Assembly: GCA_907165135.1 (NCBI GenBank)
Contig: OU015566.1
Coordinates: 3,410,001-3,474,000, forward strand
From: Oikopleura dioica
Lineage: Eukaryota > Animalia > Chordata
Direction: 5' to 3'
DNA length: 64,000 bases
In this document: positions 7,280 through 11,230 of the stretch, piece after piece
How positions within the stretch are numbered: the first letter of the stretch is position 1
Layout: every line of letters begins with the position of its first letter
Notes under the pieces: model-generated
What the model was told of the DNA's origin: nothing
Database searches by the model: none
The model's input: only the letters and a program-made list of their open reading frames with translations
Made by a program: the position numbers and the translations under genes

Positions 7280-7429
7280 TGTTTTCCTTAGAAAAATAAA
7301 CTAAATCAAGAAAACATGATTCTTGTATTTTGTTCGATTTATAAGTTTTTGTCAGGATTATTGATGAAAATGATGATTATTGCTAAGCCCATTCATGTAG
7401 GTTTTATCCGTTTTTATTTCACTTGACGA

Positions 7430-8348
7430 TTATTCGTAGATGATTTCAGAGTTGTAACTGAGCTGGTGTCTTGATGGAGGATACGCAGGATAAATCGGTT
7501 GTTCTGGAGAACTTCGATTAGTTGCTTGAATTGTTGTGATGTCCATCAAATTAAATGGAATAGCTTGGGCTTCGAAAAATTGATCAGCCTCGCTTCTGTT
7601 TGACGATGGAGAATTTTTGTCTCGAAGAGCTTTTTCTTGATTGTTTTTCTTCTGACGATGAATAAGAAAGATGATAAAAAGAAGAAAAAGGATCAAAAAT
7701 ACGATGAAAACGACCGCTATGATTTTGAATTTTTTGAGATCTTTTAGAAGTGCTTTGTTGTTGCTTTTGCATGACTCTGTTTGAGAAATCGGTACAATTT
7801 TCGCTTTTTGTAATGTATCAAGAGCCGTTGTTGTCGAGTTCGTCATTGGTTGTTGCTTTTTGACCATTTTTATTGGAGCTCTGGATGTTGAGATTGTTGT
7901 TGAAGTTGTTGTTGCTCTCATTGGTGTTTTTGTTGTCGTTGTTGCTGTTGTAGTTGTTGGGCAAGTTCTTCTTATTTGGAAAGATTCATAGCATTGCTGA
8001 AGTCTCATTTGACGATTCTCACTCTCTCCTTTTTCATTCCTCAATTTCCCTTTGAAAAGCTAAAAATCATGTTAAACTTTATGAGAATCAAAATAAAAGC
8101 AAAAGAATGCTCACATTTTTCTTGCGAGTCATTTTCTCCAAATCATCCTTCAAATTTTCGATCGTTAAATCTTTTGACCAATTTTCTTGCTCCAAACCCT
8201 TGATCCTATCCAAAAGAGAAGACCGATCAGAAGCGGAAAAATCATCATCATCAGTCAAAGAATCTCTTTCGACCTCGCCATCCCCGCTCGATTCCCCACT
8301 CGATTCTTCCGCAAAAACAGCGAAAATAAAAATCAGAAAAATTTTCAT
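7430..8348 (-). CDS. Type I membrane mucin-like protein (coiled coil, T-rich stalk, TM)
   Basis: ORF 8088-8348 gives the signal peptide MKIFLIFIFAVFA. ORF 7430-8044 gives poly-Thr, the TM IIAVVFIVFLILFLLFIIFLI and a cytoplasmic tail. Confidence 0.7.
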
Positions 8349-8565
8349 TTTGCATTTCTGAGGTTTTCCCTTCTCTAAAGATGGTTTTATAGTTGCAGTA
8401 TTTGCGCATTACTAATAACAAGATCGAAAAAATCATTAGACAAACATCGCCAATTTTTATTTGCAAAAATTGCTCATGCTTATTTTCCATGGAATCGTGA
8501 ATGAGTCAAAAATTAATATCGAGATAATTTATTAAAGGGAAACATGTAACATGTATTTTTCGACA

Positions 8566-8991
8566 TCAATAGTCAAATTCGGGAATTCCAAAGTCAAGTC
8601 GAGGGCTTCTTTTGTGCATCATCTGAAAAAAAAAATTGAATTTGGGCCAAAACCTTGGACATTTTTTACCTTGTAATCGACCATTCGTCGGAGAACGCCA
8701 TTTAATCCCCGATTGTTGCCAATGGAATTAAGGGTCCAGCCTCGTGTTTCTCGAGCTGGGAAGAAGTTTGACTCCTAAAATGATGCAAAACTTTTTAATT
8801 GGTCAAAATTTTCTATGTTTTTTTATTAAAAAGGCCTATTTTTTGTAGATCGTAGCGAAAAATTGCCTTTGAATACCAAAAAATTGATGCTTTTAGCGTT
8901 ATTATTCAATTTTAAAAATATTAATGAACAAATTTCTTACCTCTTCAGCGTTGAAAGCAGCAAAAAGTCCAAAAATCTTGACAAATTTCAT
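8566..8991 (-). CDS. GAL-like: Galanin-like neuropeptide precursor (70 aa, 3 exons)
   Basis: Exons 8991-8941, 8774-8670 and 8622-8566, joined by phase-0 GT-AG introns of 166 and 47 bp. Product: MKFVKIFGLFAAFNAEEESNFFPARETRGWTLNSIGNNRGLNGVLRRMVDYKMMHKRSPRLDFGIPEFDY*. Contains the galanin signature GWTLNS, a signal peptide and a KR site. Confidence 0.85.
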
Positions 8992-9485
8992 TTTCTTTTT
9001 TTTCTGTCAAATTTTTATTTTCACTCTTTCGAAAAAGAATATCTCCACCCAAATCGCAGCAGCTTTTAAAGGATTGCGAATTAAATTCACTGGAAAATCG
9101 GGCTCGTCTCGAAAAAGCACTAATGATGAAAAACCCGTTTTGTGACTGATTGAGCTTCTTTTGCGATGCGACTTGTATCTTTTGCGTCAAGATGTTTTTA
9201 TCGATGCTTGAGTGGCGGGACAAAGGTGCTTTCAAATTTTAAAAGCCGGAGACATGTGTTGCAATTTGTGCATTTTGCATAATATAATGCTGATGCCAGA
9301 TGTCGCTGAATTAAATATTTTTGACACTAAATGAGTACTAGATAGAAACAAGATTTTTCAGAACTCGCTTGTTTTCCATCAAAAAATTGAAGAGCAAATA
9401 CATAAAAGCAGGGTGATATTTACTGTCTTCAGAATTTTAGCGACAATTTCGCATTGCGCGAATTTAACTCATTTTTAAAGTGCAA

Positions 9486-10199
9486 ATGTCGGAAGAACGA
9501 CCCCTTTCAGTAAAAGAGAGACTGGCAAGATTTGAAAATCTTGCAAATAAACCCCAGGAAAAGCTCTTACCTATTCACTTTGCCATTAAGAGTCTTAAAT
9601 TAAGACCTTTAATTTACGGATAGTTTTGATGACTGAGCCCTAAATACAGGAACCTGTAAGATTGAGACAGCGACAGGGTCCCAGAAGACGCCGGCCACAT
9701 ACTCTCAATACGTTTGCTCGAGATGAACTTGAAGGTTTCTTGAACAATCATTTACAAAACAGGCCACTAATTCCAGAGCAGCGAGAAAGTACTCCTGAAA
9801 ATTCGCCTGATGATTCTCCGGTTGAATCTCCTCCAAGAGGTACCTTTTCAATTTTTCCAAAATCATTATTTCATTGAGATTTTTAGAGGAACCTCCTCAG
9901 CAAAATAACAATCAGAGTTCTTTGGAGTTTGAAGAAACGAAGGAAAAACTCAAACTTTGCGTAAGAAAATTAAATATTTTCAATATTATAAATATCCTTA
10001 GGAGAATGCGAATAGACAACTCCAGCAAGATGTTAAGAAATTCGAGAGCAGAGTTGAAAACTTGCATTTTCTGACTCATCAAATGAAGAAGCTGGTATGC
10101 AATTCGTGCCACGAAGAAGCTATATCTGTTGCGTATGTTCCTTGCGGCCATGGCTTTTGCTTTAATTGTTTGAATGAGTTCGAGAGACCTGCGAAATAA
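9486..10199 (+). CDS. RING-finger-like protein with a coiled coil; the last Cys pair is not seen
   Basis: Spliced product MSEERPLSVKERLARFE...LVCNSCHEEAISVAYVPCGHGFCFNCLNEFERPAK*. The C-x2-C, C-x-H and C-x2-C ligands of a C3HC4 RING are present. Confidence 0.6.
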
Positions 10200-11230
10200 A
10201 ACACGGAAAGAAAACTTTCATCTAAAGAGTAAATTTATTAATTGATAAAAACATGACATGCATAATGTTGTTTTGAACGTTGTTTTTCAGAAACAGTTTG
10301 TTTAGTCAGTTAAATTAAAAATAAAAGTAGTAACAGATATGAATGAACGGGTTTTCGGCGAAAAGAACAAAAAAATAAAAATGTTAAGTCTGGATTTTAT
10401 CAGTCGGTTGTTTCGAAAATAAACGTGAAGCTATTACAGTTGAGAAGCTAAGCGGACTGGGCATTCGTGTTCTTATTGAAAATGCGACGAAGCTGCGCGG
10501 TAATCGTGTGCATTTGGTAATTGTGCGTGTATTTTTCATCCTCCTAAGGGTTTTCGGCCAATCAGATTGCTTCAATTCCCAAAAAATGGTATCGGACGCT
10601 CTGATTGGCCGAAAACCTCGTCACTTGCGGCGCTATCGAAAAATTGCGCCAACTCGATTCTGACCAATCAGAAAGCGTTATTTGACATACAAAGTCAAAG
10701 CTTCTCGTCCTTTGATTCGTCAGAAAAAATCTTCCATGATGGCGCTGTTTGACAAATAGCGCCAAAATCATTCCAAAAAGAATACTAAAATTTTCGCACA
10801 CGAAAGCAAAAACAAACTTCTGCTCAAGCATCACGTAAGTCAAAGCCCCCTTTTTCTTCCAAAAATTTGAAATCGAAGAAGACTCGACCTGTCGTGGATA
10901 CAAAAAGCGGCTTAGCTTTGGGCTGTTGGTAAAAAATATGAAATTTCATCTAGTTGAATGTTTCTTGTCTTTTTGTAAAATCGATAAAATTAGTTTCAAA
11001 AAAAGAAAACGAATCGAAGCAGCTGTAGGAAATGTTGGGCTTCTGGTGGGACTGTAAATAAAGAAAAAAAATGAGATTAAATAAAAAGAAGCGATAAAGC
11101 CGAAAAAATAAAGCTAAAAATGAGAATTGGGGAAAATGAAGAAATCCAAAAAGTAAGCTCAAAGCAGCAATAATACAAAATAAGTTGACTGAAAAGAGAA
11201 GGATCATTTCTGAGGGTTTCGTGCTTTCTC

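Follow-up and report, generated by a model that had tools for sequence, protein, structure and literature searches.

A predicted second galanin-like peptide precursor in the larvacean Oikopleura dioica and its relatives in marine plankton

Galanin pharmacology has singled out Trp2, Asn5 and Tyr9 as the classical receptor-binding residues of the peptide, with Tyr9 as a key contact. In vertebrates, GALP and the spexin/kisspeptin peptides are paralogous ligands of one receptor superfamily, and these ligands share or divide the galanin-type receptors. Galanin-type signalling outside the vertebrates was documented only for Ciona in the literature searched; there, Ci-GALP-R, which belongs to the galanin-receptor clade, is activated at 1.3 nM by Ci-GALP, the galanin-like peptide of Ciona intestinalis type A (PMC6475428).

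The locus described here lies in a window of 64,000 nucleotides of the Oikopleura dioica genome (G000:C4:3410001-3474000; the assembly has 64.28 Mb in 19 contigs). Three exons on the minus strand, of 17, 35 and 18 codons, encode a product of 70 aa (Table 1). A first-pass annotation, made from the letters alone, had proposed three micro-exons joined by phase-0 GT-AG introns, and this model proved right exon for exon. An exhaustive database search with exon 2 as query found a protein of 70 aa (P0001; GenBank CAG5103706.1, Oidioi.mRNA.OKI2018_I69.chr1.g898.t1.cds) that carries no functional name. Residues 18-52 of this protein are identical to exon 2, and its full sequence is that of the three translated exons placed end to end. 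The gene had been said to be absent from the list of open reading frames, which is correct, since even at a cut-off of 20 aa none of its exons is listed in the correct frame. It had also been described as hidden from annotation pipelines, and that part has to be withdrawn: because the database search returned CAG5103706.1, an exact copy of the 70-aa model, the gene is missing from the list of reading frames and not from the annotation, where it merely lacks a name.

The product of exon 1 contains Lys2 and Lys5, a hydrophobic run of eight residues, Asn-Ala, and then acidic residues. By inspection, this is likely to be a short signal peptide with a putative cleavage site after Ala15. The likeliest signal-peptidase site has Phe at position -3, and signal peptides are clearer in the homologues than in the window precursor. 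In exon 2, R-E-T-R directly precedes the core GWTLNSIGNNRGLNGVLRRMVDYK. The KR that had been noted downstream of the core is present in exon 3. Next downstream on the same strand, beginning about 220 nt past the stop of the peptide gene, are two open reading frames (8348-8088 and 8044-7430) with a signal-peptide-like start, an acidic, Ser-rich, coiled-coil-like stretch, and then a transmembrane segment within a Thr-rich region. These may belong to one two-exon gene, which is possibly an operon partner of the peptide gene.

Table 1. Features of the peptide gene, in positions of the window
Feature	Position	Strand	Description
Exon 1, coding part	8941..8991	-	17 codons; ATG at 8991; residues 1-17 of P0001
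Intron 1	8775..8940	-	166 nt, GTAAGA...TTTTAG, phase 0
Exon 2	8670..8774	-	35 codons; short propeptide ending R-x-x-R, then galanin-like core
Conserved peptide core GWTLNSIGNNRGLNGVLRRMVDYK	8670..8741	-	Alignments, hhalign against the Ci-GALP-type family, sub-threshold Pfam Galanin match
Intron 2	8623..8669	-	47 nt, GTAAAA...TTTCAG, phase 0, immediately 3' of the DYK codons
Exon 3	8566..8622	-	18 codons and TGA; MMH, KR at exon residues 4-5, 13-residue C-terminal peptide
AATAAA, putative polyadenylation signal	8528..8533	-	32 nt past the stop; inferred from sequence

Exon 2 of the window gene spans the whole of Ci-GALP, with 15 of 28 residues identical and one gap (E 4e-9), and the alignment includes the P-x-R upstream of the motif. 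Both the Ci-GALP sequence given in the first pass, which is printed in PMC11345136, and the close alignment claimed for it are correct. In a six-frame search of the entire 64.3 Mb genome, Ci-GALP matched two loci only, that in the window and one other; therefore, the resemblance is not a matter of chance.

In what follows, type B refers to a group defined here around the window gene, and type A to the Ci-GALP-like set. The segment GWTLNSIG (exon 2 residues 12-19) aligns to positions 1-8 of the Pfam Galanin model (PF01296) with 11.1 bits and E 0.41, below the gathering threshold of 20.5 bits, while the whole of P0001 gave no Pfam match. The same sub-threshold match recurs in eight of nine type-B and in all eight type-A members, with best E values of 0.015 and 0.041, respectively, so that all tunicate-type sequences tested fall below the cut-off. 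When a type-B profile was searched against 177,635 PDB sequences, galanin and a galanin chimera were the only matches (E 0.2), and GWTLNSIG was aligned with galanin residues 1-8 in chain L of PDB 7WQ3; with exon 2 alone, only an artificial repeat protein was returned (E 0.47), which is noise. Since the Pfam match is sub-threshold and covers eight positions only, what ties the gene to vertebrate galanin is the N-terminal motif, together with the published clade placement of Ci-GALP-R (PMC6475428). The protein language-model neighbours of the gene product are nearly all neuropeptide precursors, including those of galanin and spexin, and serve as a lead only. At the level of sequence comparison, the assignment of the window product as a galanin/GALP-family (Ci-GALP-like) peptide precursor holds.

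About 20 type-B relatives of the window gene were found, all of them proteins without a name in the marine metagenomes and metatranscriptomes of Tara Oceans and JGI. They have the core GWTLNSIGYNRGF.DVLKKL(I/M)DYK, and the pattern G-W-T-L-N-S-I-G-x-N-x-G..V-L....D (columns G29-G36, N38, G40, V44, L45 and D50 of P0001) is invariant among them. The window gene has the core that defines the group, GWTLNSIG(Y/N)N(R/G)G(F/L)..VL(K/R)(K/R)(L/M)(I/V/M)D(Y/Q)(K/R), and lacks an amidation signal; of all members, it deviates most at positions that are otherwise conserved (Y9N, F13L and D15G). Trp2 and Asn5 are kept in the window peptide, and position 9 is Asn rather than Tyr. Asn9 also occurs in two metagenome contigs (L051 and L053), whereas Tyr is present in every other type-B and type-A sequence. 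A comparison of the type-B with the type-A profile by hhalign gave a probability of 98.3% (E 2.5e-14, 26 columns). The literature search returned no paper with the type-B motif, and none tying Oikopleura to a galanin-like ligand. The subfamily is apparently undescribed; the family itself is already known.

A second mark of the subfamily is an intron in phase 0 right after DYK, and Met as the first residue of the exon that follows. This arrangement occurs in the window gene and in contigs L051, L044, L048 and L052, with the position and phase in L051, L044 and L052 as in the window, and the intron is absent in the species of L007. In genomic contig L052, one GT-AG intron lies upstream of the core and a second immediately follows DYK; both are precisely absent from metatranscriptome contigs L006 and L004, which are from the same or a sister species; L004 is cDNA, because a remnant of the template-switch oligonucleotide is present at its start. 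Likewise, metatranscriptome contigs L012 and L013 lack a 42-nt intron that is present in the metagenomic contig L007. In another metatranscriptome contig (L048:426-640), the first intron is gone, the post-DYK intron is kept and the sequence extends past the polyadenylation signal; this may be a partly processed transcript, or reflect a difference in intron presence between genomes. Four RNA runs carrying the species label gave zero to two partial reads anywhere on 7400-10400, neighbouring genes included. Because the neighbouring genes are likewise nearly devoid of reads, these runs are uninformative on expression of the window gene; perhaps they come from another cryptic lineage.

The reading that we consider probable is that the locus is a functional gene of three exons and encodes a secreted galanin/GALP prepropeptide of 70 aa, a divergent type-B paralogue whose product would act as a non-amidated GPCR ligand. 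According to this proposal, the predicted signal peptide of 15 residues would be removed after Ala15. Cleavage by a prohormone convertase would come next, both behind the R-x-x-R that precedes GWTLNS and behind the KR of exon 3, and the basic residues would be trimmed by a carboxypeptidase. The expected product is about 27 residues long; its N-terminus resembles that of galanin, and its C-terminal half is conserved and probably helical (..VL(R/K)(R/K)(M/L)(V/I)DYKM). An internal dibasic pair is kept in every member. Since its counterpart in Ci-GALP remains uncleaved, the pair in the window peptide is expected to stay intact. As a neuropeptide or hormone, the long peptide would signal through a class-A GPCR of the galanin/somatostatin/opioid group. 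A conserved C-terminal peptide of 13 residues would also be released; its conservation suggests that it may have a separate role, and it may be a second bioactive product.

It is tempting to go further and to regard type B as a separate, larvacean-restricted signalling system that arose by duplication of tunicate GALP, with a receptor or receptor selectivity of its own, with the replacement of Tyr9 by Asn, fixed in the O. dioica-like lineages, as the mark of altered receptor use, and with the near-invariant 13-residue peptide as second bioactive product, but this extension is speculative and, in our estimate, unlikely. Less probable still is that the product is a constrained secreted small protein rather than a neuronal GPCR ligand, for example an epithelial or house-associated protein or an antimicrobial one, in which the ancestral motif has been retained. 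The loss of the canonical Tyr9 in O. dioica-like lineages would suit such a protein, as would the lack of an amidation signal in the window gene. Yet what is invariant throughout type B is the part of galanin that binds the receptor, its N-terminus; in most members the core has basic cleavage sites on both sides, and the nearest neighbours in feature space are neuropeptide precursors. All of this argues against such a protein.

The second locus matched by Ci-GALP in this genome lies on another contig (G000:C2:6146997-6147047) and is the better match of the two. Its GenBank model (P0026; XSR.g15051, OKI2018_I69) is identical to Ci-GALP at 18 of 24 residues (75%, E 1e-12), and at 18 of 36 to the window gene. 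Both locus and model read KR-Q-T-GWTLNSIGYNAGLNALQKLF-GKR, that is, they include an amidation signal. The type-A tail, ..GYN(A/G)G(L/M)..L..(L/M)F, usually followed by G-K-R, is present in P0026 and replaced in the window gene by ..GNNRGLNGVLRRMVDYK. The particular form in P0026, ..GYNAGL.AL.KLF, is shared with Clavelina and other sequences; the Clavelina protein, the sole named ascidian protein found, is of type A. The KR-Q-T-GWT.. start of the type-A gene (L002:1357-1780, at about 6.1469 Mb of G000:C2) could form an N-terminal pyroglutamate. Downstream of the gene lies a convergent alpha/beta-hydrolase gene, and the same is seen in a related contig (L049).

These data bear on the possibility of direct orthology between the window gene and Ci-GALP, which would make the product of the former the single galanin-like ligand of the animal. 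Alignment over the whole length of Ci-GALP, P-x-R included, is what would be expected of an orthologue, but the gene in the same genome with 18 of 24 identical residues, against 15 of 28 for the window gene, is P0026. It is also P0026 that has the Clavelina-type tail, while the window gene groups with the separate NRG(F/L)..VL...DYK family, which makes direct orthology very improbable. The first-pass proposal of a larvacean galanin-family ligand thus stands as regards the family and the secreted precursor, and fails as regards a Ci-GALP counterpart, a place better filled by P0026 on the other chromosome. From the sequence comparisons, the window gene is best described as a divergent second paralogue, the O. 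dioica member of a separate, conserved type-B subfamily. With a type-A gene elsewhere in the same genome, larvaceans therefore carry two predicted galanin-like ligands.

A scan of metagenome contigs with a degenerate pattern found a close orthologue in L051 and L053, with the same phase-0 structure of 17, 35 and 18 codons. The first exon of L051 ends in ..LNA-xx. Its GT-AG introns, of 39 and 41 nt, are at the codon positions of those in the window, while the intron sequences of the two cannot be aligned; all splice sites are preserved, and the stop codon is in the same place. In exon 2, the differences between the two genes are mostly at third codon positions, and in exon 3, 17 of 18 residues are identical, with six synonymous changes and one non-synonymous change. 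For the core and exon 3 together (changes counted exon by exon and summed), pS is 0.55, pN 0.03 and dN/dS 0.03. Exon 1, encoding the predicted signal peptide, evolves much faster, with 52% of synonymous and 31% of non-synonymous sites changed. In two other species pairs of type-B relatives, dN/dS is 0.05-0.09. The 13-residue C-terminal peptide (8566-8607; L051:4004-4045) is identical at 12 of 13 positions, and about 60% of the synonymous sites of the exon are changed.

A dN/dS of 0.03 at near-saturated synonymous sites, together with the conserved structure, therefore rules out a wrong frame, a chance reading frame and a dead copy. This also disposes of a different reading frame for exon 2 (8670-8774), which had been named in advance as the result that would overturn the model. 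Chance resemblance, or a decaying duplicate modelled by an ab initio gene finder, is scarcely credible: the window copy is indeed the most divergent member at conserved positions, but about 55% of synonymous sites have changed at a dN/dS of 0.03, exon lengths and phases are identical to those of L051 with intact splice sites and the same stop, and Asn9 is common to the window, L051 and L053 and is therefore an old, retained state. By these sequence measures, the window gene is real and evolutionarily constrained.

The exons neighbouring the orthologue in L051 and L053 match the chromosome of the window (contig C4) with 67-80% nucleotide identity at scattered positions, which fits a divergent O. 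dioica-like lineage as their source. The neighbours in L051 and L054 are found at 3.06, 4.08, 4.71 and 4.96 Mb of contig C4, outside the local neighbourhood of the window; as judged from these matches, linkage is conserved and gene order is scrambled. In the synteny check, the contigs of the relatives shared no flanking genes with the window. No DNA match in this genome was obtained for contigs L007 and L052, and a neighbouring gene of 389 aa in L005 has neither a Pfam match nor a match in this genome.

A search of the genome for a GALR-like GPCR had been proposed in the first pass; among the loci tested, none had a galanin receptor as best match. The PF00001 profile found at least 53 7tm_1 exon matches, and the GPCR loci tested against the PDB had angiotensin, opioid, somatostatin or amine receptors as best matches. 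One GPCR exon (L015; G000:C5:3690848-3691423) has SSTR3 as its best PDB match (1e-11) and also matches GALR1 (3e-9). From these matches it is predicted to belong to the somatostatin/opioid/galanin group and is a lead only as a candidate receptor. A homologue search in this hunt for the receptor returned only unnamed metagenomic relatives.

Larvaceans are the fastest-evolving chordate lineage. The nervous system of O. dioica is very small, and the species is therefore attractive for mapping peptide use cell by cell. It has two genes predicted to encode galanin-like ligands, one of them from a conserved subfamily that has no name and recurs across plankton metagenomes. The two provide a concrete pair of peptides for synthesis, localisation and receptor tests, and a case of ligand duplication, perhaps also of change in a key binding residue, in this lineage. 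GenBank CAG5103706.1 could now receive a name.

Among the known systems, vertebrate galanin has GWTLNS-x-G at its first eight positions right after a basic site, as does the window peptide, and the two are also similar in predicted length, at about 27-30 residues. The similarity between the two ends at about residue 12, and the window gene has no GMAP domain and has Asn for Tyr9. Vertebrate GALP and spexin/kisspeptin set a precedent for several paralogous ligands, and spexin precursors are among the feature-space neighbours of the window gene. Of the alignments to galanin and spexin that had been suggested, that of GWTLNSIG to galanin residues 1-8 was obtained, while for spexin and kisspeptin no match to the window gene was seen at the sequence level, so that any relationship would consist of the galanin motif only.

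Like the window product, Ci-GALP is a tunicate peptide with the motif GWTLNS-x-G-x-N-x-GL in an internal or N-terminal position and a dibasic pair in the C-terminal half that looks uncleaved. The two differ in this C-terminal half, which is ..NGVLRRMVDYKMMH in the window and ..GALRKLFE in Ci-GALP, in residue 9, which is Asn instead of Tyr in the window peptide, and in the basic R-x-x-R directly before Gly1 of the window peptide. The nearest comparison within the same genome is with P0026, which has the GWTLNSIG start and the same design of a signal peptide plus small exons. P0026 is split into four exons by introns that differ in position and phase from those of the window gene, and has the sequence KR-Q-T-GWT.., an F-G-K-R amidation signal and the tail ..YNAGLNALQKLF, whereas type B lacks the amidation signal and is characterised by phase-0 introns and the DYK/M junction.
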